A DNA stretch of 64,000 bases from Lepidodermella squamata (taxonomy: Eukaryota; Animalia; Gastrotricha), in contig JBLDXI010000024.1 of assembly GCA_047495785.1 (NCBI GenBank), positions 124,001 through 188,000 on the forward strand, written 5' to 3'. Position numbers and translations under genes: made by a program. Below, one piece after another: positions 17,862-64,000 of this stretch. Each line of letters opens with the position of its first letter. Within the stretch, counting starts at the first letter, position 1. Below the pieces are notes generated by a model, which saw only the letters and a list, made by a program, of their open reading frames with translations, was not told where the DNA came from and searched no databases.

Positions 17862-18602
17862 ATGCATTCGAACAATTACATCAAAGAATGTGACTTCATT
17901 TTGCGAGGTAACGTCCGAGCTTCTCCGCATTGGATTTAATAATTTTCTTAATCGATTGTGTGTAGATTATATAGCCCATAGAATCATTTCAAGCCATGCT
18001 AACCATGGAAACTGTGATTTGGCGTCGTCATTATGTCGAAATGGCGCTGATATTAACATTCATCCTAAAATAATTGAGCTGGTTCGCCATCTCGCGCTTG
18101 ATTTTGAGAAGAGATATCGTGATAGCTACGGCGATCAAATTCCTGAAACGCCCCCGCATTCGGCTCTTTCTCTGGATTCTGCCGACGCTCGCTTGTCATT
18201 CGAGGCTGTTGCCAATGAACTATTTCAAGGCGGTTGGAAGTGGGCCCGAATAATTGCTTTCATTTCCTACGTGGGATTATTGGCGGAGGCCACGTTCTCA
18301 TCTGCAGCTTCTGATGATTCGGCAATCAAGGAGCGAATAGGCAAAATTATCGACTGGGCAATGGACTACTTTCAGTGCGCTGATGCCCAAACTTTTTTCT
18401 GTTCATGCAATGGATGGGTAAGACTGGAATTTCTTAGAAGATTATATTAAATCGACATTTGTTTTAGGAGGGTTTCCTAGACTGGCATGGGAGCGGAGAT
18501 GCTCGCCTCGCTGCCGCTCCTTTAAAACAAATGGCCGTTGTCGGCCTCACGGCAGCAGCTATGGTCGGCTTGAGTTTTATGGTCGGTCGCATAATTCACT
18601 AG
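17862..18602 (+). CDS. Multi-BH Bcl-2 family protein with C-terminal TM anchor; exons 17862-17907, 17966-18417, 18468-18602
   Basis: BH4-like FILRDYIAHRI; BH3-like LVRHLALDFE; BH1 ELFQGGWKWARIIAF; BH2 NGW|EGF split by the intron position conserved in Bcl-2/Bcl-xL; hydrophobic tail MAVVGLTAAAMVGLSFMVGRIIH. Confidence 0.85.
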
Positions 18603-18927
18603 CTGACTTGGGTTTTTCATACATCAATCAGTGCATATAATTGAGCTGTTTTTATATCAATTTATTGTTTGCGTTTGATAATCGCCTTCATTGTGTTTTG
18701 TAATATATTATGACGTATCTCAAGGAACTGAGCGCTTGAACATGATCTTTTATCTTCCTAATTGTTGCCTTGCCGGTTTCTCGTCTTGCTCAACAATGCA
18801 ATTAAAACGAAGCTCGCTCATTTCTTTAATTTCGATTTCATGTTTACATCTAATTTTTGTTTTCTTAGATAATTTTTATAGTTCATGGACTTACACTGAC
18901 CGCTGCTGGGAAACAAACTAATTCTCG

Positions 18928-21900
18928 ATGATGGCGGAATTACCATCCGAATGCAGCATACGCGTAGTATGCCGCGTTCGTCCGATGAATTCATCGGAGG
19001 AGAAGAACGGCAGCCAATCTATAGTAAGAGTAACCTCAGATGATTCGCTGATGTTGGCTGCCAAGACGTACAACTTCGACAAAGTTTTCAAACAAACTTG
19101 CACTCAAGAAGAGGTTTATACTGCTGTCGCGAAGCCGATCGTGGCGGATGTCCTGTCCGGCTTCAACGGCACCATCTTCGCATATGGTCAAACGTCTTCC
19201 GGTAAAACGTTTACCATGGAAGGTGAAATCGGAAGCCCGGAGAGGGAAGGCATCATTCCTCGCATCATCTCAGATATCTTCAACTATATATACCAAATGG
19301 ACGAAAATTTGGAATTTCACATCAAAGTTTCGTACTTCGAAATTTATCTCGACAAAATTCGTGATTTACTGGACATCAGCAAAACCAATCTTTCAGTACA
19401 CGAAGACAAAAACCGAGTGCCTTACGTGAAAGGCGCAACTGAACGGTTTGTCTCTTCGCCTGAGGAGGTTCTCGAGACGATCGAAGAGGGCAAAATGAAT
19501 CGACACGTTTCTGTAACCAACATGAACGAGCATTCCAGTCGCAGTCATTCAGTGCTAATGATCAATATAAAGCAGGAGAACAAAGAGACTGAGAAAAAGC
19601 TCAACGGCAAGTTGTACCTAGTCGATTTGGCCGGTTCGGAAAAGGTTAGTAAAACTGGAGCGGAAGGCAGCACGCTTGACGAGGCAAAGAACATTAACAA
19701 ATCGTTATCCGCCCTCGGTAACGTAATAGCCGCTCTAGCTGACGGAAACAAGGCGCACGTGCCTTATCGAGATTCGAAACTGACTCGTATTTTACAAGAA
19801 TCTTTGGGTGGTAACGCTCGCACCACTATTATCATTTGCTGCTCCCCGGCCTCGTATAACGAATCGGAAACCAAATCCACGCTTCTGTTTGGTGTCCGCG
19901 CCAAGACCATCAAGAACGTTGTCACTGTTAATGAGGAACTCACTGCAGATGAATGGAGGAGGCGCTACGAAAAAGAACGTGACCGGTAAGTACTCGCTGA
20001 TTTTTCTAATTATTTTCGGGAGCTGGATTACCTATTTATTATTTTAATTTTTCCACTGCCTTATTTTGCTTGTAATATTGTCACGCTCAAGTTTACTAGA
20101 TTAAAGTGTTTTTGCGTGATAATTTTGTGAAATTCTGCTTTAATTGAAACGTCGTGATAACAATGACATGTTTGTGTTTCCAGGTCTCTGCGTCTCCGCA
20201 CGCACGTATATTTATTGGAACAAGAGCTGGCGCGGTGGCGGCGTGGCGAGTCTGTCCCCGGCGATGAACAAGCGCCTTTCATCAGTCATTTGCTGGGCAG
20301 CGGTGCGGCATTAGGCGCACCTCCTGGCGGCGAATTCACCGCCCCCGCCCCGGCGACTATGACCCCGAGCTTGTCTCTGACCCAGCTCAGCTCGATTTCG
20401 AGTCAATCGCTGCCGTCGCTGACGGTGGACGAGCGGCGGCAGTACGAAGACGAGAAGCGGCGGTTGTGCGAGCAGCTCGACGACAAGGATGAAGAATTCA
20501 CCGAGGCTGTGCAACAACTCGAGAAACTGCGATCTCAAATCGCCGAGCAGGAGGAACTTCTCGTGCTTCGTCAGCGAGAATTCGACGCGCAGCAGGCCGA
20601 AATGCAGCGCATGCAGGCTGAAAACGACGCAGCTAAGGACGAGGTTAAGGAGGTACTAACCGCCCTCGAAGAACTGGCTGGTAATTACGAACAGAAATCG
20701 GCCGAGGCCGAGGCGAAGCGGCACGAAAACGAGTTGCTAGCCGAGGAGTTGACGTCGAAACTCAGCACAATAACTGCGATTGAGGCCGAGCTGGACCGGC
20801 TACGCGAGCAGTCGCTCCTGCAACGGCGGCGAATTGCCGACCTGGTTTCCGGCCTCGTTCGTGATATTACCGATGCCATGCAAATGTTGCCGTCTTCCGC
20901 CGCCTCGAAACAACAGGCACCAGCGCCTGCTCAGTCGCAGGAGGCGAATGCTGACAGACTCGAGGATGACGTGATGACGGCGAGGATGAATGTCGGTCGC
21001 ATGAAGAGCGAATTGAAGACGCTGTCGTCGAAGGTGTCGCAGATGGAGCGCGAGCACGACGACTTCAAGCGAATGGGAGACGGGCTTGCCGTCGAATCAG
21101 CCGCCCTAAGAGAAGCGGCTAAGGAGCGGCAAATTCGCGTTGAACTAGCCGAGCAGCAGCTCTCGGAAGCTGAGGCTCGCCAGTCTCAACTGGAGACTGA
21201 ACTCGAGCAAGCTAACGCGGAGTTGGCCAGACTTCGCGGCGGCAGTGCTGCGGATGCGGCTGCCCCGGCTGCAGCCTCAGCCGCGCCCTCTGAGCCCGCC
21301 CAAACCGCGGCGATCGAGCAGCTACAACGGCAACTTGGACTCGTCCGGCAAGAAGTTCGTGATAAGCAGGCGGCTTTGGAGCAGCTACGTGATTCTAACC
21401 GTCAACTGACAGCCGCCGTCGACCGGTTGCAGATGGAGCTGGAACGGGCGAGGCGGGACGACGCGGACAAGGCGGCGCAGTTGGCCGAGCTACAACTGGC
21501 GGCTGAACGGCGCGAACAGGCGCGTCAAGAGTTGCGCGGCCTTGAAGAAACGGTGAACAAGGAGCTGCAGACGCTGCACACGTTGCGGCGACTCTTCGTG
21601 CAAGACTTGCAGGCCAAGTTGAAGCGGTGGACTGCGAGTGCAAGCGCGAATGCCCAACAACCCGGCAGCGACAACCAGTCCGGCACCGATGATAAGTCGA
21701 TTATCGAGGACGAAAACGGCGCTCCGGCGGCGCCGGGAGGTGGGGGCAGTGTGATTGCTCAGAGACAGAAAATCAATTTCTTGGAGACGAATCTTGAACA
21801 AGTGAGCTATTAATTGCTTTTATTTATTTTAGTTTAATGGGTTCGATTTCTGATTTCAGCTCACCCGCGTGCACAAGCAGTTGGTTCGAGACAACGCCGA

Positions 21901-22621
21901 CCTGCGATGCGAGCTCCCTAAACTCGAAAAACGCCTTCGAACAACTATGGACCGCGTCAAAACGTGAGGATTTATTTTCATATCTCGTCTCACGAAAAAT
22001 CCTACTTAACCGATTTTTTTTGTCAAAACTGGGAATTTCCTGGAATTTGTAACCAAAATGTCGACATATTTTATTGTGGGTAATAAAGCGCAGCTGGCGC
22101 ATTTTTTGGGCGTGGCCGAGACATCTTCTCACGTGTAGGCCCACAAATTCAAACCCACGTTTAATGATCACGTTTTTCGCATTACAATGGCTTATTAGTT
22201 CTGTGATTGTGCTTCAAGAATGTGTGCTTCGAGCGGTAGAAGTTATGAAAACGAGTTGATTAATTTTGAAAGGATTGTTTTTGCTGATGAATCATCATGG
22301 TGGTAATGACCGTTTGATATCTTTAACAGATTGGAAGGAGCGCTCCGTGATGCAAAGGAGTCGGCAATGCGCGACCGCCGGCGCTACCAAATGGAGGTAG
22401 ATCGGATTAAGGAGGCTGTGCGGCAGCGCGGTCTCACTCAGCGCCGGCCGCATATTCCTCAGATTGTGAAGCCGGTCGCCCGGCCGCCGGTCGTGCTACC
22501 CGCCACGCCCGGGACTCCGGTGTCGGGCGGTGGCGCCTCGACTACCGGCACCCCCACGCCCGTCGTTCGACCCGCGGCAGCTCAAGCCAACCAGCAGCAG
22601 CAGCCGCCATCGACAAACTGA
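18928..22621 (+). CDS. KIF5: Kinesin-1 heavy chain; exons 18928-19985, 20184-21801, 21860-21963, 22330-22621
   Basis: P-loop [38 protein letters not shown]; neck [13 protein letters not shown]; tail [23 protein letters not shown] and [14 protein letters not shown]. Confidence 0.97.
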
Positions 22622-51530: not shown

Positions 51531-54500
51531 TCAATGTGACTGGCCAAGTGACATGTGCAAGACCTTGGTTTCGAGTTCGAACAACTTTTTGGTATGCAAT
51601 GCCAACTTGCTCAAGATCAAGCTGTTGCTAACCGGATGTTGGCGCGACGTCACGCCGTTGTGGTTGCTATTGCTAATCACGCTAGGGGCCATGCAGGCGC
51701 AACTTCCAGGTCTACCATCGCTTTTACCGCAATCGCAAGCGCAGTCGTCGATAGCCGCGGACACCGATGGCTGAAACGCGGCGATAGGCTGGAAAAACGG
51801 CGCCGCGGTTGCCATGTCGCTCGCTGGCGCGTGTTTCAAAATCCGAAGCCTTCGAACCTTCATCAACAACCGATTGAACAAAGATCCGCGGCTATTTGAG
51901 CTGGTTTCTGCGGGGTTTTCAGGCAGAAACAGCGAGTCGCAGGGTATGAAAACTTCATTCAGACTTTCTCGACTCGAAAAACTCGCCGCAGATGAAGTTG
52001 CATGGCTTTCACTCGTAGGCGTGTCCTCCTTTCTGCCGGTTTGACTCTCGACCGCAGAGGCAGCTCGGGTTAAATAGCTGTGAAGCTTGGAGAAAAGTAA
52101 CTCAGGGTTAGTCTCATGACCTTCATCCCAACTTTGCGTGGTCGGCCGAGGGGAGTCCTGCCCGGATAGCTCGGTGACAATCGTCACAGTAGTCGTCGAT
52201 TGCGGAAAACCAACTGCTGGCTCTTCCGCCAAAACGCTGCCGATATCATCGAGGGTGTGAAAATGGGTCAACGGAATCGCAGATTCCTTGTCATGGTTTT
52301 TAATATAGCTCGCTTTGCCGCTGCCATGCGATGCAATGGTGCGCCGGAAACCGTTTGCTGTAGTCGACTCGCGAAAAGACGAGTTGCGCCCGTCGTTGAT
52401 CCAGGCGCGATGGTGCGTGTAGTGCTGTTTGTTTGAATTGTTGACTCCTAGTGAAAGCCGGCGGTGTTGCATCATGCGGGTGAGGAAAGGAACCTGACTG
52501 CCATTCGAGTCGATGCTGTTAGCAGCTGATAGTTTCATAGGAAAAGACCGGTTAAACGGCAGCCACCGCGATAGCCCCGAAGTTGTTGTCGACGTGGTTG
52601 AGAGCAGCCGACCGTGCTGGGTAGTTGCAACAGCGCCGCCCATACCCGAAGGGCCACTGATGCTGCCGCGAGCCAGGGCGTACGTGAAGGTGGAGAACCG
52701 CTTAGCGACTGTCGAGTCGGGAATTTCGCCGTCCCAGCAATACCACGCCACGGACGGACAGCATTTACCGTATCGCCAAGCCAGGTATCGCTGCACAGCC
52801 CTCATTCTAAAAACACAAAGAAATTTTCAAAAAAACCTTGAAAAAAGCTAGGTGGCAGTATAATTCAGAATAAAGATAAGGAAAATTACTGCTAACAAGT
52901 GAAAAGTGGGGACTTGGCGTATTTTCTGTATTTTTCCAACAACGTGCAAAAGTGTGTTGACTTGGAGAGGGACGATTTTTGGATTCTTAAATGTTCTTAC
53001 TCAGTTTTTCTTTAGGATTTTGAATTTTCAAATTCAGACCAATCCACATTAAAAGACGTCAGACCCCAAAGTTTCGCCGAAATGGCTCATCAAGTTAGGT
53101 TGAAGTGGAAGCACTAGCTTGATTTGAAATTTTTTGAATATCTAGCATGATTCCTCTATTCAAGATAAATTTTGAGTGCGCGCGAGAAAATATTAGGAAT
53201 TTATTGCGCGAAAAATTATTAATTGATACAATAATAAAACTAAATTTTTAAGCGGGCATTTTTTGAAATTAGCAATTTTCACCCGTAAAATTCGAAGCCC
53301 ATTTTCTCTGTAACTACGATGACTATCAACCTCTTTTTGATTTCGTCCGACTCCTTGTTCATTGATCTTGAAAGCGGCATCAAAAACTCACGAAGGCGAA
53401 AATTTTGCCGAAACCCACTTTTCACTCGTTAACAGCCTTTGGGTCTGAATATTTGTAAATTGAATCGTCATTGAACTACATTGAACTTCCGATTCTTTCC
53501 TTTTTCTTAGCCGATACTGATGACCCCACGACTCAAGGAATTTATCATTTTAGATCTGGTATAGGCATGATAATTAAATTTTCAAGATTCTGGGGAAGCC
53601 CAGACATCCATATATTGGAAAACTGAGGAACCCTAAATTAGCGCGTCACCTTGGCACACTCGCTGTCTGTTGCCAATTGAGTTGATTTGATAATGAGTCT
53701 AATTTTTATCCAACAATTTGAAACTGTCACTTTGCCACGCATTAAATTATCCAAAATGTCAGAGTGTACAGATTTTACCTAAAAGCGGACATTAGGACCG
53801 CTCAAATTTGAGATATATATCTATCGCCTGGACGTGATTATAGCAAGAAGTAAAAAACCTTAATACCTTATGGTGTAGATTATGGGATCGAGAAGCGGGA
53901 AAAACATAAGCATGCTGTTTAGAACATTATTGACGTCCATCATCCGCAAATGGCTGCCGTTGGTTCGCATGTAACCGAGGCGCATCAGCACAACCATGAG
54001 AACTTCGAACAAAACGAAGGGCACACGGCATAGCAGGAAGGCGCCGAGTAGCAGCAAAGTTGTCACTATCAACTTGCGCGTATTGACGCCGCGAGTATCG
54101 CTGCGCATGCGCACGACTTGGCGCAGCACGCGGCAGTAGATCGGGATCAAAATTAGGAAAGTCAGTACGGTCAGGCCGATGACGAACAACTCGAACCACA
54201 GCTTTTCAGCTGCATGGTACGAGCACCAGCCGAGCATGTGCGGCTCAGAGTCTTTCTTGATGATTTTCTTGATGAAATCCTCCAAGATGGATGAATCATT
54301 CGGCAGGACGCTGCAAAAATATAATGATCATTATTAATCAAATTAGGCCGAACGTGGTGTTCAAAAACAAAAATAGACTACAAAGAAAATGATCACCCAT
54401 AAAGCAAGAGAAAGGTCAAGCTTTTTAACAGAAAAAAGTCTTATTTTTTTCGGAAGTTGACAAGCGATGGCAGCGAGCAAAACGCGAAATAAAATGTTTA

Positions 54501-56348
54501 AACCTTTGCGTGAAATTCTTAGTCAACGTCTTATTTAAAGGTTGTGCTTTTCGCTTGCGAATGCTCGAAAAATTATAAAAATTACAGAACTCTGCGATTT
54601 ATTCGTAATTGTATGACTTACTAATTCATGATCTCCTCAACCGGGTCAAAGTATTGCAGATCGTCCTCGTTATTCGGCGCGTAATCGCCGGTGCTGACCC
54701 CAGGGACGTCGGGGAAAGTGACGTGGGTTGACTCGGTGCTACCGCCCTTGAAGGTACCTGCGAACGGCGTGGGTCGAACATCCTCTAGCGAAGTCGGGTA
54801 GTCGCTCTCGTTGAGTATGTCCAGCACGGACATGACGCGATCTTTCAACATATAGCCAGGGCTAACAGTTGTGTTCACCCTCGGCAATGTTGTATCGGTG
54901 AAGTCGTAGACAGGAGCGGCAACAGTCGATTCAGTAGCGCCATATCTATCGTAGATAGAGGCGCCGACAGTTGATTCAGTTACGTCATGCATGTAATCCG
55001 TATAATCGCCCAGAAATTCTGACCCATTCCAGCGTCCCAAAGCGTCCCACAGTGCCGGCGTTGGCGACGGCGAGGCTATGAGCGAGGACGCTGGTGTCGA
55101 CGGGGAAAGACTCAATAAGCCTAAGGAAGATGTTGCAGCCGATGTGGTTGCGATATGGCGCATATTTGATAGAATCCCGCCGCCTCTTTCGTTGAAATTC
55201 CAATCATGACCGAAGTAATAGAAACCGAATAGAATGAGACTGTCGACAAGGGCAGACAGCAGCGAAACCAGCCAAATCATGAAAATTGCCAAATTGACCA
55301 CGCGAGCATTTCCCATGATTTGCTGATATCGAAGTGGGTAGAACACGCCGATATAATGGTCCACAGACATTCCAAACAAACTGAGAAGGTTACTCAAAAG
55401 ACCGGCAATACTTGAAATTTAAAAAAAATTTGAAATTTTAAAATAAGATGTCCCAAAAATTACTTTAAGCTTCGCAAGAAATTTGTCCCACACTTTTGAA
55501 TGAGCAATGACTGTGTAGCGTTCGAAAGTACTTGATGTGAAAAGTTGGCGAGGCAAATCAAAGCCGTGAAGATATCGGTAACGCTAAGATTTATCAGGAA
55601 ATATCTGTAGCCCTTGAGATCCAGCTTAATATTGCGAATAGCGCCGATAAATATTAAATTAGCTAAGATAGCCAGCAGTGAAATAATGACATCAGCTAGA
55701 ATCCAGGCTCCTTTCGGGCTCTCGAAGAAGAACGCGCCATCTGTTCGAGGCGTAGCTAGAGCTGTTTGGATAGCTTCGAGCGCGCGATCGGCCATTTGCG
55801 GATTTTTGCCCGACCCGCGTCGTCCGGGCATGGTGTATAGCGACGGGATTGTGACAAAAGTCGAATTACCAACGCCTGGCATCATCTGGCGCATCATATA
55901 CTGCATGACAATGGCCCGGGAAATATTTTCAACCTCGGCCAATTCGCTGTTGGAAATGCGAAAATCGTGGCGCATGACGTCACTTCGAGAGAAAACCATG
56001 TCTGAGCTGTTGCTTGCCAAACGTGTGAGATGCTATATGTCGAAAAATTATTATATTAGAAACGTTACGCCTACAACTCGCATGTATAGCTATGCTAATT
56101 TACGATAAGTATATGTAGTAGTCAAAAATAGCCCCGCTCACCTCTTGATCCCCAGCATCTGCCGCAGTGTCATCTGAGGAATTGTTTCTTTGCGTGATGT
56201 TCCTTTCATCGTAGATAAGTAGCCGGGGCGATGTCGTGATGTTCTCGGCTTCTTCGTCTATAAACATCGGCTGAGTAGTCGGACCTATCGATTGCTGATG
56301 CGCCAACCTCAGCATAGCAAGGAGGCAGAGAAATATCGAAAAGATCAT
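51531..56348 (-). CDS. Class A GPCR, paralog B, with signal peptide and long C-tail, multi-exon
   Basis: Signal-like MIFSIFLCLLAMLRLA; FLINLSVTD, SVDHYIGVFYPLRY, WCSY, FLLCRVP, LDPIIYTIR|MRAV. Confidence 0.88.
52889..53435. mobile_element. MITE-like insertion in the large last intron of GPCR B
   Basis: Imperfect ~29-bp TIRs ctgctaacaagtgaaaagtggggacttggc / gccgaaacccacttttcactcgttaacag; second partial copy at ~315-420. Confidence 0.65.
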
Positions 56349-57849
56349 TTCCTATAATCTAATCATGAAGAAAGTGTTACTAATAGCGGACTAACTAAAC
56401 ATAGGATTGCCAATTTAAAATTTCTGAAGTTGAAATATCACCTGCGAGGCGAGATAAAAATAAATATAAGGTGGATGCGCGTGACTTTTCAACTTTGTAC
56501 AAAAAATTTGTTCCACGACCACGTTATCGAATCTATTACGCAAAATTGGATTGATTTCGGCGTTGGGCAGGGTCGACTGCGCAAAAATTTGCGTTAACTA
56601 TTTTAAATAGTAGTCAAAATATAGCGTAAACACGCCGTGCTTCAATAGAAAAAACGTTAGCTTGAAAACTGAGGCGCGAGGGAATAACCCGCGTGTTTTT
56701 TGGTCACATGAATAAGTAAAAGTGCGAAAGTTGCCATACGCTAAAGCAAATAGTTCTATATACTTCATATAGTGTTATTTTTTAATAAATTTAAACGATA
56801 TATAGGATTTTCAGCTAGAGACGGTAAATAAATGAGCGAGAGTTTTTTTCTACATAGACTAAGTATTAGGAAGGGAGTAGTAGTAGTAGTAGTACATACA
56901 GGTGAAAGCTTTTAGGGAAGTTGTGGCGGCTAAAAAACGCGACTAAACACGCGCAGCAGGTGTTGTTTGCAATAGCAGTGATGGATGTCCGCATTAAAAC
57001 GTGCCTTTGTACGAATCACGGCGAGGGATTCAGCGACAACTGACAACAAACTGCGGCTATTTTTAAACGCAGTCGATGATATGATCGATGAGGATTCGCA
57101 TTATCACGTCTAGCCTGAGAGCAGTTGACAAATTGCCCTATATTTCGAAACGGCTATCACTTTTTATGCCCACTTTAGCGTTTTAGCAGAACGATCATTA
57201 CGTGAATCTTGAGCGAATTGAAACGCATGACTGATCGTCGTGTGTTTCATAGAAACTGTGAAATCTCATTAAAAATGTCGATAATATAAGAAAAAATCAT
57301 AACTGCCAGCAATAACCTACACTCCGCTTTTGGACTTATCCAGCTCAATTATGAGGAAATGCAACGAATCCTGAATCTTAGGGGTAGGTGGGTTTAGCAA
57401 GATTTTATAAAAATAATTGGATTTTCATAAAACGAGTTCGCAAATAAAAATCCCGATGAATAAGGAAAACCTTTTTAATGGAAACTTATGATAGGATTAA
57501 ATAGTCGTCAGTTCACCCCCCAAACGCCCCTCACAGTCTAAAATTGTAACAAAGAATCTTGAAACTTAGGAGTTTGCACTCGACTTCCGATCAACTGCGA
57601 AATTAAAAAAAATCCAGGTGTTGAACTCAGCAGTCCGGCATCCGGCTTGGTGGCAGAGTTGACTCCCGTCCAAACCTGAAACACAAAGTAACATGAACCA
57701 GTTACTTTGCAGAGAAGAGAATGTTCTTAAGCTGGATCACATCACTCAAAAAATTTTATTCATCGAAGAGGAGCCAACATTCATCTTTCCATACAAAAAT
57801 AGCTCGCGGAAATAAGAGCTCGTTTTACTATTACAACACAAGTTCAAAA

Positions 57850-60800
57850 TTATAGTGCACTCTCTTCAACGTCTGTTCCTCCTGGATGCATTTTCGTTTC
57901 TATCGGCAAATCACAGCCGTTCAACGCAAACAGCAAGCGCGTGTGATTTTCGACTTTGCTTAAAATATAACTAGCTGAGATCGACGATTTTCGCAGGTTA
58001 TCTCTCGCGCCCGGGTTCAGTAACAGGGCGGAGGGAGGCAAGCCTTGCGCTGAAAACTCGCTGCTGCACAGCGACAGAGAACTATCGTCCTCGCACTGGT
58101 GAATACCAGCCTGGTAGCCTCGCCGGGGCAGAAATTCCGGCGCCTCCATTTCGTCGACGGACGACCATGACAGCGAGATTTTTTTGAGGAAACGCCACTG
58201 AGACGAGTCACCGGGCGGGTTCGCGCCCAAAACAAATCCGCTGTTGCTTCGCCGGCTGTTGACGTCGATGGTCGGGCTGAAAATCGACGCGTCAAACTGC
58301 TCGAGCGGGCTCTTGCGGTGCGCTGTTGGCGGCGGCGGGTACTGCCGCTCGACCGGGCCCGGTTCGAACCAGTTATTCTGCAAATCTAGCAGCCGCTTCT
58401 CAACAGGACTCCGCCATGAGAAGTCTTCAAACGAAATGCGTCTAGCTGAACTTCGCCGGGACGATGACGCGCTCACCATGGGCGTTGAGGGCCGGTGGTT
58501 CGCGCTCATTTCCGACGAAGTTATGAGCGATAGGCCAAGGCCTGAGTCTTGCACGTGAATACTGCCGTTCCTTCGCACTTTGTAAGCAAACCCGTTCGAC
58601 ATATCTGGCACTGTGTCATTCTCGTTTTCGCCATTGGCCGAGTTCAGCAACGGGAAATTATCCGCCGTGAGATTTCGGGTGTCGCGTCGCCCGCAAAGGG
58701 GTGATCTAGTGGTGCTGGGTCGGAAGGGCGCGAAAAACTGGCTATCGTTCGGGGTTCGACCTTGCAGATCTGAAGGTTGCGATGTGGAGAAATTGGTCGT
58801 CCCCAAGGCAGGATAGGAGGCCGGCATGCGCTTGCAGCACCGCAGAACCCGGTTGTAGACCTTCCGCAACCGACTTCGCACTACTCTCAAACGAAAAGCG
58901 TAAATCTGCAAAAAAAAACAGCGATTGAAAACCGAAAAAAACAGCATTCAAAAATTACCACAGGGTCGAGTAAAGGATGTAGGATTAAGGTGGTATTAAG
59001 CACCTTGTTTACAATCATGAGCCTTTGATGGGTGTCAACTTTCAATAGCTGAATTTGATCCGTGCGAATAAGCAGCACCATAACCTTGAAATTTCAGACA
59101 GGCATAGAACATTTTGTGAAAAGCTATTGATTTAACGAACCGCTTCAAAAGTGATAAATGGAATCCAACAGAAGAAAAATGCACCGAGTAGAATGACAGT
59201 AGTCACGACCAGTTTTCCTGTTTTGTGAGACAGGCCCTTTTCGTCGCGTTTCGACCAAACCTCTCGGAATATTCGCCCGTAAATCATGAGAAGACCGATA
59301 AAAACTAGCAGGGTCAAAAAAACTGAGCGAAAAAGAGAAAATTCACACCTGGGTACAAAATAATGACCGGGCCTATCTTACCAACAGCAAATTCCATCAA
59401 TTGCTTGTTAAGGCTATAATAAGAGCACCAATCCATGAAGCGACTGCCATCCTACTCGAAAAAAGACTGAAATAACACATGAAACTTTTTGGCTAGAATT
59501 TACCGTGTCCGCATCGAAATCTTGACTAGGCATCAAAGGATCAAGTAAAGAATCACTATCAGGCCCGGAATTTCTGAAAAATTTATTTTGAAAAAATTTA
59601 AATTTATTTTGAATTGTTGAACGAACAATTTTTCCGCGATTTGAGATGAATTTAGATTGCCAGTCGCGTAACCATTGAGAATTTCCTCCATTTCCTTGAG
59701 TAATTTTCCACCGCTGCTATCTTTCTCTTTAGAAGAACTAGAACTATCGACATCGGGCGCTAGACTGGTCGGCTCTTCCATGGGCACCGCTGTCGAAATG
59801 ATCAGCTCCGGCGGGACGACGAAAATTTTGTCATCCGTGAACGCGTCCAAATTGTCCCACTCTAGCTGCTGGCTCGCATTGCCACCAGCCGCCGCAGGTG
59901 ACCCGAACAAAATGTCGAATAAAAGTTTATTAAGGTGGTTATCCACCTTGAGCGAGCCGTTCAACGCCGGGCCGCCCGACGTTGGGCTGCCCCACAGCGG
60001 AACGGGCGATCGAGTTTGCGTTGGCATAGCCGAAAAGTGAGCAATCGTGATGAAGAGATCGAAAAAGCCGAAAATGATAGATAGCAGCCAAGAAAGCGCA
60101 ACTGTAACCCAGATGACTTTCGTGGTCATGAACTGGTGGTAGCGCAGCGAGTAGAACACGCCGATGTAGTGGTCCACGGACATGCCGGCGAGGTTCAACA
60201 GCGCCGACATGTAGGCGGCAATCGTGAACGAGCGCACTATAGTTCGGCCGCACCGGTCGATGAACGCGCTCGACTGCGTGTTGGGCAGAAATTCGGCGAT
60301 CGGCGTGAACAGCGTCGTCGTGCCGATGAGCAGATCGGCGAAGGCCAGCGACAGCAAGAAGCCGCGGTAGCCTTCCAGCATCGACTGCGAATGGGCGCGC
60401 TTCACGGCGTACAGCACGAAGATGTTGAAGAAGATGGCCATGAGCGCCACGGCAAAGTCGATGATCAAAAGCTGAAACAATTTTCAAGTAACTATTACCA
60501 AGTGTTATCGTTATATACTTACCGACTTGTTGATGATTTCCTCCATGCGAAATAGAGATCGGCCATCAATGGAAACGTTCGACGAAGCGGTGGCGACTAT
60601 TGCTGTAATGTAAGGCAAAGGCAAATCGATAATTACGCTTGGCGGCGACTCATCATCACAACTCCAGAATAACAAAAATTAGACAAATGGCGCGGGCTCT
60701 CAAAGGATCGATCAAGACCAAAGCCCTGGAAAATACTGCCGTCCTCCAATCAAATTTAAAATTCAATTACAATTTCATCCACGGCATAGTGTTGTTGAAA

Positions 60801-61076
60801 GCGAGAAATAATAATTTCTTCTTCATCATCTAGAAGGTGCATTATTCAACACTATACAATTATTATGCTTAAATCGAATCGTAATGCGACCGTTTAAAAG
60901 ATAGCGGAAACCCTACCCACAAATAAATCGATTTTTCGCAATTTCGAGAAATGCAATCTCGACGCTTACTTACCGCTGATAGTTGTAATTGTGGAGAGTG
61001 CCAATGGAGAAGCTACAAGCGCGTTTGCGCCGGCAATCGAAGACTCGTTCAGTACCAGCCGGTCCATCATCATCAT
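57850..61076 (-). CDS. Class A GPCR, paralog C, multi-exon (first exon 61076-60974 inferred)
   Basis: AIFFNIFV, LSLAFADLL, SVDHYIGVFYSLRY, WCSY, FFFCWIP, LDPV|IYAFRL; first exon MMMMDRLVLNESS... joins in phase 1. Confidence 0.85.
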
Positions 61077-61882
61077 TATCAGCAGCAGCAGCAGCAGCAG
61101 CAATCCTACGGACCAGCGCAGAAAAAATTATCCGTGATCACGCGACGCAAAGACATCACTCGCTATGCATTTTTTCACTCGGCGGAGTCATCAGTGAATT
61201 AGGTAGTATACCTTCAACGAAAAAAATATAACATCGAGTATTATAAAGCACAGTTGAATGGCTTCAGTGAAATAGGGTGATAGGATAGGAGGTTCGGTTA
61301 GCAATGAAGTGAGCGAAGACATATCAAGTTACAACTGCTGCGATAGCAACAGAGCGACAAATGAGCCATTACTCACAGCCCTGGGAGTGTAAGCTGCAAG
61401 TACAATACAAGCCAGCATGTGTGGCTGTTGACTTGGCTTGGAAAATGCCGTCTCGTTAGCTTCCACGAGTGTAGCGTTAGTGAGCAGTTTTATTGCTAAA
61501 TACAAATATAGCGACATGAAGTATGAAGTTTTCTGCGGACGGTGCGAATGCGTTGTTAATTTTGTATTAATAAAATCGCCACAGTAGAGTTATCAAGCAA
61601 AATCGTGGATTTACTCTCACCGACGTAATGCATCAACAAAGTACTTGTTATATTCTCAACTCCACTCACTTAGAATCGAACATGACAGCTTTGTTATACA
61701 AGAGGATGTACGCCGGGTAGAAATCTCGTAATTGACATTTGAAATCCAAACATCTTTTCCGTAATTCGAATCGATAATCATTATGAAACAGAATAGCGCA
61801 AAACACAATTCGGGTGGTTTCCAGCCTTTATTTTGTTATAAGCAGCCACAACAATTTTTTTTGCACACTAAAGCTAGCACAT

Positions 61883-63548
61883 TCATTTGCGTTTGCTGAA
61901 AATCTTCAAGGTGGTATCTGCAGATGCGCTCAGCAAATAATCGTCCACCGTCCAGCAAACATCCATGATTTTGTCGTCGTGACCACTCATGTCGAACAAC
62001 GGCACTTTCGGGCTGGAAAATTTAGTTTCAAGGTGGATTAATTCTGAAATATTCAAGGTTACCTTCGAGTATCCCACAACTTCATGACATTGTCGTATGA
62101 GCCAGAAATGAATAAGTGCTCGGCTGATTTGGACCAATCAACAGAAGAAACCCAGGTAGAATGTGAAGTGAAAGTGGATTTCACTACCAGTCCCTCTAGA
62201 ATGACGAAAAATTAGCAAAAAATTATTTGGTAAATATTCGAAAAATATACCATCTGATCGAGGGTCGTATAGTCGGATGTGGCGATCAGTTGAGGTAGTC
62301 AAAAGGCACTGGTTCATAGGAGAATATGACACGGACATGAAAGCCCTTACTCCTGGCTGAAAATGGAAAAAAATTAAATTAATATTAAGGAGGAATTTTT
62401 AAAACAAACAATTTTTCGATTTTCGCGACCAGCCTCCAGATCCCAGAAGACGAGAGCATGATCGAACCCAACAGTGACCAATTCCGAGTCATTCATCCAA
62501 GCCAGATCTGAGATACCCTCGTTGTGTCCAGATAGGGTGACCAGAGGTACAACTCGCTTCACCGCTGAATCGTTGCTATCATCTTCCTTCGTTTTACGCA
62601 TCTTTCTCTTGTGACCCTTCGACTTCTTCGCCCCTCCGTTATCGTCACTGATCGCCAATTCTTCGTCATCGGCGTTGTCTTTATTTTCGCTCACATTCGA
62701 GTCATTTCCAGATGATGGGTTTAGGTTCAAATCCCAGATTTTGAGCATAGTATCCCAACTTCCTGAGGCGAATCGCTGTAGATTTGGGCTAACTGCCACG
62801 CAATCGACACTGCCAGCATGACCCCGTCCGAGAACTGCGGGATGCAGCTGCCAGTCATCGTCCCGAGACGACGCCGGAATGGCCCGGGTCATCATCACGG
62901 TCTGATCGTGAGCACCACTGACCGCCAATATTTCGTTATCCACTTGAACTAACGCAACGGATTTCACGGGAGCAGTATGGCACTGGACTGAGGCAACCAT
63001 ACCGTCGTTCATGCTCCACAAATTGATTGAACCATCATAACAACCCGTAAGCATTCTGTCAAGACAAGGATCGATAATTTCTAGGCACAACTTATGATAT
63101 TTCGACTTACATTGTATCCTTATCCAGCTTAATAGAAGCAACGGATGAAACCCAATCAGGGTGAGGGCATGAGATACATGGTTCAGGAGCAGATTCTTTA
63201 GTGAAATATTCCAACTCAAGAACTGATTCCTGTAATAGAAAAATGTATTCAGAATCTTTGAATAATTAGTCCTATATTCACCTGTGGCAACTTTTTAGCC
63301 TCGATGAGCTTTTCCAGCGTAGATTTCAACACGTCTTCTCCGCATCGAAAATCAAATGAAACAGCCTCTTCCGCAGCGTCTTCATCCGCTTCTTTCAGGA
63401 CTGTGTTGATCAATTCAGACAAATCCTCCGCGGTTGAGGTCACGCTGAGAGAGTAAACAGTGGACGGAATGGCAAACTCCGCTTGCCGTGTGGTAAAACG
63501 AACTTGCACCGATTGCTCATCGACATCGTCACTCAATTTTTCACCCAT
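61883..63548 (-). CDS. WDR12: Ribosome biogenesis protein WDR12/Ytm1 (NLE/UBL + WD40), multi-exon
   Basis: VQVRFTT..., SFDF..GEDVLKSTL, LTGCYDG, GRGHAGSVDCV, SGSWDTMLKIW, PLVTLSGHNEGIS, DRHIRLYDPR, PLFDMSGHDDKI. Confidence 0.93.
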
Positions 63549-63604
63549 TGTTGCAAAAAATAAAACACCTATGCAGTGACAAATTGAATTAAAGTGAAGT
63601 CGAG

Positions 63605-64000
63605 TTATTTCCAAGTTATGCTGCATATCGAGCAACGGACGCCTTCTAAAATTTCCAACTCATTTTCAACAACAAAACGATGTGGATCATTCGGATGGGT
63701 TGTCTTCAAATATTCCGAGAATTCCAATACGGATCCTCCAGTGCCGAAATAGTAATACTTGGCGGCTAAATAAGCCACGCCGTTTGGTTTGAGGCATCTA
63801 GCCAAAAGTGACTTCAGCTTGAAATAAGAGCTCGGGACGTAGATTGTTTCACTCATGATTATGACGTCATATTTTTCAGAAACGAATCCATCTGATTCAG
63901 TCAACTTTCCCCAGTCGCCATAGAAAAATTTCGATTTCCGAAGCAATGCCTCGCCATTCACGGCCACGTTAGGTATCGTCCAGCTTTCAATGACCTCCTT
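63605..64000 (-). CDS. METTL18: Histidine protein methyltransferase METTL18/Hpm1, 3' part (runs off the window)
   Basis: TIPNV, FFYGDW, KYDVIIMSETIY, YLAAKYYYFGTGGSV are characteristic of METTL18. Confidence 0.85.
   Translation of the reverse strand, partial: KEVIESWTIPNVAVNGEALLRKSKFFYGDWGKLTESDGFVSEKYDVIIMSETIYVPSSYFKLKSLLARCLKPNGVAYLAAKYYYFGTGGSVLEFSEYLKTTHPNDPHRFVVENELEILEGVRCSICSITWK

Follow-up and report, generated by a model that had tools for sequence, protein, structure and literature searches.

In the tunicates Ciona intestinalis and Oikopleura dioica, operons are mostly dicistronic and contain housekeeping genes, with distance cut-offs of <100 bp in Ciona and 60 bp in Oikopleura, and a single spliced-leader (SL) class serves operonic and monocistronic genes alike (PMC7986045). 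Flatworms possess polycistrons in which same-strand pairs lie <=300 bp apart and the downstream gene is SL trans-spliced at UUNYAG, as exemplified by cytochrome b-c1 subunit 7 and enolase in trematodes (PMC12582326). Flatworms have been proposed as the sister group of gastrotrichs (PMC6468455). In the operons of C. elegans, the intercistronic distance is ~100 bp (PMC7986045).

The gene pair considered here lies in a 64,000-nt stretch of DNA from the gastrotrich Lepidodermella squamata, hereafter the window, whose GC content is ~44%; that of the L. squamata genome is 43% (PMC11660948). Both genes occupy the minus strand, where the sequence runs from the stop codon of METTL18 through 56 nt to the ATG of WDR12. 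This unusually tight pair was correctly observed and, judged from its sequence, is a reasonable operon candidate. Its interpretation as a dicistron resolved by SL trans-splicing is plausible, with a likelihood that we place a little below even.

Identity and structure of the two genes

A METTL18-type (Hpm1-like) protein-histidine methyltransferase gene is represented by its 3' part, which spans 63605..64000 on the minus strand; the gene continues past the window edge. Its open reading frame ends with the codons TGG AAA TAA, the stop lying at 63607-63605. The identity was read from the C-terminal 131 aa that fall within the window, the catalytic N-terminal part being located beyond the edge. 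This fragment matches Pfam Methyltransf_16 (PF10294, E 5e-6), and its sole PDB match is human METTL18 (4RFQ, E 3.8e-12), in which residues 19-99 of the query align with residues 180-263 of the 292 in the chain, at an equal distance from the C-terminus in both proteins. A Methyltransf_16-type fold, together with METTL18 as the nearest characterised relative, supports assignment to METTL18/Hpm1.

The WDR12 coding region (61883..63548, minus strand) encodes 466 aa in six exons, at 63548-63282, 63229-63111, 63055-62410, 62356-62251, 62195-62063, and 62012-61883, with the start ATG at 63548-63546 and the stop TGA at 61885-61883. The model draws on RNA contig joints, translation, exon chaining, the NLE and WD40 domains, and PDB matches. 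Sequencing runs were examined as assembled contigs; X1 and X3 are taken as RNA because their contigs are spliced, and X2 is genomic DNA. Five GT..AG joints are present in spliced contigs of both RNA runs, and an independent exon-chaining script reproduced the six-exon model exactly. Exon 1 encodes the Pfam NLE domain (E 3.7e-15, residues 14-82) and exon 3 encodes Pfam WD40 repeats (E 7.5e-22), while the best natural PDB matches, collinear with the predicted protein, are human WDR12 in 8FKY_SP and 6N31 (E 1e-27). The order of domains, NLE at the N-terminus and then a WD40 propeller, and a best match to WDR12 rather than NLE1 argue for assignment to WDR12/Ytm1.

The 3' end of WDR12 is also defined by RNA. 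Its 3' UTR of ~67 nt (61815..61882, minus strand) contains a canonical AATAAA at 61832-61827 and extends to the poly(A) site, 61816/61815, which is marked by a 21-T loose end before 61815 in an X3 contig, 11-12 nt past the AATAAA. A further X3 RNA contig of depth ~9 covers 61474-61680, 135-340 nt beyond the poly(A) site, a stretch devoid of X1 depth. Read-through, an isoform with an extended 3' UTR, or a short transcript that has escaped annotation could each account for it. Between WDR12 and the next receptor gene lies a CAT/CAG-type trinucleotide repeat (61062-61110), one frame of which reads as a run of His/Gln. On the minus strand, two receptor genes of the rhodopsin type (Pfam 7tm_1) are arranged in tandem at 54621-55999 and 57850-61011. 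At 60151-60183, contigs of X1 and X2 depart from the window sequence, with loose ends of 75-255 nt and a joint that goes back 2183, which suggests a paralogue or a structural variant.

Searches of sequence collections returned little. The WD40-exon reading frame had only matches of 30-34% identity in protein collections, the frame of WDR12 exon 1 had none there, and a complete single-exon frame (the first exon of a CDK5 activator gene) had none among encoding contigs; thus, the source organism is absent from those collections. A metagenome scan for synteny in relatives likewise yielded no close relative, the best match having 28% identity.

The gene names and coordinates proposed by the first-pass annotation, which had been made from the letters alone, proved correct when set against Pfam, PDB, and the RNA-supported gene model. 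METTL18/Hpm1 modifies RPL3, and WDR12 is a subunit of the PeBoW complex. The functional link between the neighbours would therefore stand as far as gene identity goes, but selection for clustering cannot be shown by one post-hoc pair.

The 56-nt gap and its candidate splice acceptor

The intergenic gap (CTCGACTTCACTTTAATTCAATTTGTCACTGCATAGGTGTTTTATTTTTTGCAACA) occupies 63549..63604 on the minus strand. Both the same-strand spacing of 56 nt and the absence of AATAAA within it, two observations from which the operon had been proposed, were confirmed, the former from the stop at 63607-63605 and the ATG at 63548-63546. The nearest resemblance to a poly(A) signal, and the sole one near the METTL18 3' end, is an AATAAC that overlies the METTL18 stop codon (63604..63609, minus strand) and may have a role in 3' end formation; by contrast, WDR12 has a canonical AATAAA. 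The gap also contains two Inr-like motifs of the type TCA(N)T / YYANWYY, TTCACTTT and TTCAATTT, which may allow a transcription start inside it.

Two haplotypes of the gap are present in the DNA run X2. In minus-strand letters, one haplotype has gained CACT, a 4-nt duplication, between 63575 and 63574, as well as TT between 63555 and 63554. Both indels are heterozygous and occur on one X2 contig at about half depth, for a net gain of 6 nt, so the gap appears to be loosely constrained. The TAG at 63571-63569 is retained in both haplotypes, with spacings that shift by 4 and 2 nt. The WDR12 frame is likewise open in both haplotypes upstream through the gap, as far as an in-frame ATG at 63626 within the METTL18 coding sequence. 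An N-terminal extension of WDR12 from this ATG was rejected on the grounds that the two haplotypes would encode different residues and that an open frame of 26 codons arises by chance with a probability of ~0.29; the open frame at 63626-63549 is probably meaningless. Fusion of METTL18 to WDR12, whether through read-through or through a 72-nt intron that starts at the GT at 63640, was also discarded, as the two reading frames do not agree and translation across the junction meets a stop.

The candidate trans-splice acceptor is the TAG at 63569..63571 on the minus strand, which includes the only AG of the gap. Its AG (63570-63569) stands in the context TTGTCACTGCATAG|GTG, 20 nt ahead of the WDR12 ATG, and the leader junction would be expected just before 63568. 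If this site were used, WDR12 would keep a predicted gene-encoded 5' UTR of 20 nt (GTGTTTTATTTTTTGCAACA, 63549..63568, minus strand). A U-rich run is also found in the gap, positioned after this AG.

To place this site among known acceptors, a scoring matrix built from 12 true (RNA-supported) cis acceptors was used. The TAG acceptor scored 2.86 bits, within the range of the true sites (-1.3 to 10.3, each left out of the matrix when scored); 10.6% of the 6885 AGs of the window score at least as high, and 33% of random intergenic positions have an equally good acceptor no more than 60 nt away. AGs are not abundant in the gap, with one present against ~2.96 expected in 55 positions. The hexamer itself, GCATAG, has a pyrimidine at -3 and no UU at -6/-5, and TTNYAG is found in 9/12 of the cis acceptors. 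On its letters, then, the site is no better than chance, being compatible with use and offering no evidence of use. The first-pass description of a 3' splice acceptor holds for the presence of the AG and its distance of 20 nt from the ATG.

That description had also stated that the acceptor has no obvious donor partner, and here it was upheld. Among the 12 RNA-supported introns, 11 measure 50-59 nt and the remaining one, a 5' intron of the neighbouring receptor gene, measures 371 nt. No GT occurs 45-60 nt upstream of the AG at 63570-63569, the size class of introns in this organism, and no joint into 63568/63569 occurs in the RNA contigs listed.

Acceptor-like sequences are, furthermore, enriched ahead of start codons in the window. 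For 12 predicted starts, the highest-scoring acceptor in the 60 nt on the 5' side has a median score of 4.7 bits, compared with 0.8 at random intergenic positions (Mann-Whitney p=0.001), which fits the frequent use of acceptors just 5' of predicted starts, whether by trans-splicing or by introns in 5' UTRs. The upstream acceptor of WDR12 itself (2.9) falls below that median. Individual strong acceptors include TTTGTGTTTTTAG, located one base ahead of the ATG (52805; positions 52805-52820) of a predicted 424-aa gene that has no Pfam match, as well as TTTTCTTAG and TTTTTATAG, located 46-60 nt before the ATG of a kinesin gene.

Transcript evidence and competing explanations

Both genes are expressed in X1, and the transcripts of both are spliced. 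METTL18 is represented by an X1 RNA contig at 63699-64000 with a depth of ~47, and the contig that covers the 5' end of WDR12 stops at 63527 with a depth of 165. By depth arithmetic, this 165-deep contig explains nearly all of the depth in 63401-63600, and the METTL18 depth (~45) explains that in 63601-63800 only if its coverage ends at ~63600-63640. A METTL18 coverage that stops near 63600-63640, with no run-on into WDR12 at that depth, fits two separate mature mRNAs. Apparent contig depth, which is a poor measure, is ~150-390 for WDR12 and ~45 for METTL18, a difference of 3-8 times that hints at separate control.

The listed RNA contigs of X1 and X3 give no coverage of ~63528-63600. They include no contig that bridges the gap, contigs being prone to drop rare precursors, and no leader-like loose end at 63568, cDNA termini being commonly lost in fragment libraries. 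The X1 loose end at 63527 continues as AACGCAGAGTACATGGGG followed by AACCATCTG. We take AACGCAGAGTACATGGGG to resemble the 3' portion of a SMART template-switch oligo, in the orientation opposite to that expected of a genuine 5' end, and the loose end was accordingly treated as a library-adapter chimera. The 9-10 letters after the adapter may come from the 5' terminus of a further abundant cDNA and might belong to a leader; when the 9 letters of this chimera (GAACCATCTG / AACCATCTG) were tried as the start of a leader, no copy was found in the window. A search of the whole window with Rfam at the gathering score gave no SL RNA gene or other match, and a lax threshold over 56000-64000 returned only a weak snoRNA-like sR53 (E 0.3).

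About a dozen genes could be delimited in the window from long open reading frames, Pfam domains, and the chaining of exons across short introns, and the 56 nt between METTL18 and WDR12 is the tightest same-strand gap that can be delimited there. The same-strand gap between the Bcl-2-like gene and the kinesin gene measures 478 nt, that from the WDR12 poly(A) site to the earliest exon seen in the receptor gene that follows measures ~800 nt, and predicted same-strand pairs have gaps of 209-960 nt. That the other same-strand gaps are far longer argues against a genome so compact that promoters would as a rule lie within neighbouring genes. In the first of these pairs, the Bcl-2-family reading frame occupies 17890-18450, and the kinesin gene follows on the same strand with its motor domain from 18928 (window positions 17890-22621).

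These observations bear on several ways in which the pair could be expressed. The two genes might be independent and simply packed closely, with no trans-splicing involved: WDR12 transcription would start in the gap or in the last METTL18 codons, METTL18 would be polyadenylated through a non-canonical signal, and the AG would be there by chance. The presence of one AG in 56 nt, fewer than chance would give (2.96), an acceptor score matched in 33% of random intergenic windows, the two YYANWYY Inr-like motifs, haplotype indels indicating a loosely constrained gap, and the lack of a leader at 63568 in the contigs listed are all in keeping with this arrangement. It would, however, oblige 56 nt to contain a 3' UTR, a poly(A) site, a core promoter, and a 5' UTR in a window whose other gaps are much longer, and it leaves aside the enrichment of acceptor motifs ahead of start codons; we consider it unlikely, while granting it appreciable weight. 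A promoter of WDR12 within the 3' coding part of METTL18, with SL trans-splicing at the TAG (63571-63569) removing an outron from the transcript, would dispense with the operon while retaining the acceptor. Many monocistronic genes are trans-spliced in animals that use SLs (PMC7986045; PMC12582326), the WDR12 contig depth is several-fold higher than that of METTL18, and trimming would remove upstream ATGs, such as the in-frame one at 63626, that would be a handicap in a long 5' UTR left untrimmed. Against it, the analysis identified no promoter element, gaps between the other genes of the window are at least 200 nt, and the contigs listed contain no leader at 63568; this arrangement is, in our judgement, slightly less likely still.

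The AG at 63570-63569 could instead be the acceptor of a cis intron, with a non-coding first exon of WDR12 located upstream of METTL18 or within it beyond the window edge, so that the genes would be nested or overlapping. The 371-nt 5' intron of the neighbouring receptor gene indicates that longer 5' introns do occur, but the contigs listed contain no joint into 63568, there is no fitting GT at 45-60 nt, and the GT at 63640 would define a 72-nt intron that starts in the METTL18 coding sequence and whose product runs out of frame into a stop. This explanation is very improbable.

The operon reading is favoured by a spacing of 56 nt, which falls under the distance limits applied to operons in tunicates and flatworms, by its being the tightest gap delimited in the window, by the occurrence of AATAAA at WDR12 but not at METTL18, and by the enrichment of acceptors 5' of starts. 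A YAG located 20 nt before the ATG, with neither a cis donor nor a cis joint in the contigs listed, favours it as well. The weak GCATAG acceptor, the higher depth of WDR12, and the Inr-like motifs in the gap count against it and keep the rival explanations alive. The SL-resolved operon put forward in the first-pass annotation has therefore been sustained in part: gene identities, the 56-nt spacing, the lack of a canonical poly(A) signal, and the lack of a cis donor agree with it, and no leader, dicistronic RNA, or defined transcript 5' end appears in the contigs listed.

Under the SL-operon reading, METTL18 and WDR12 would be the last two genes of a small operon whose upstream extent lies outside the window. 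A single promoter upstream of METTL18 would drive their co-transcription into a joint precursor RNA. The METTL18 mRNA would be cleaved and polyadenylated between a few and ~35 nt past its stop codon, possibly guided by the AATAAC, and the WDR12 mRNA would acquire its capped 5' end through SL trans-splicing at the TAG (63571-63569), which would leave it with 20 nt of gene-encoded 5' UTR.

Significance and comparison with known systems

The resolution of operons by SL trans-splicing is itself a well-known mechanism; if the present reading is true, its novelty would reside in a lineage that has no published record of it. A search of the literature on gastrotrichs together with spliced leaders or trans-splicing found no paper linking them, only an unrelated review, and introns, operons, and trans-splicing all go unmentioned in the paper on the L. 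squamata genome (PMC11660948). That the pair is a true SL-resolved operon coupling two 60S-biogenesis factors, in a phylum whose searchable literature has no mention of either SL trans-splicing or operons, is a possibility that we hold tentatively. If confirmed, the locus would be an example of operons resolved by SL trans-splicing in the little-studied gastrotrich lineage, with implications for the number of times that operons and SL trans-splicing have evolved among animals and for the question whether gastrotrichs and flatworms have them in common. For genome annotation, tight pairs such as METTL18-WDR12 tend to be fused into a single gene model.

The operons of tunicates resemble this locus in the 56-nt gap, the two-gene layout, and the predicted 20-nt 5' UTR. 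In Ciona, poly(A) and trans-splice sites usually abut, at a median distance of 1 bp (PMC7986045), a feature against which the METTL18 poly(A) site can be set only as a predicted position. The flatworm polycistrons share the short same-strand spacing, but they differ in the acceptor, which at this locus is GCATAG, with a pyrimidine at -3 and no UU at -6/-5. In C. elegans, a specialised SL2 is used together with a U-rich element located between the poly(A) site and the acceptor; in the gastrotrich gap, by contrast, the U-rich run comes after the AG, and the animal is not known to have a specialised SL. The SL2 operons of that nematode, in which same-strand genes are co-transcribed and 3' end formation of the upstream gene is coupled to trans-splicing of the downstream one (PMC7986045), offer a lesser likeness to the METTL18-WDR12 pair than do the operons of tunicates and the polycistrons of flatworms.
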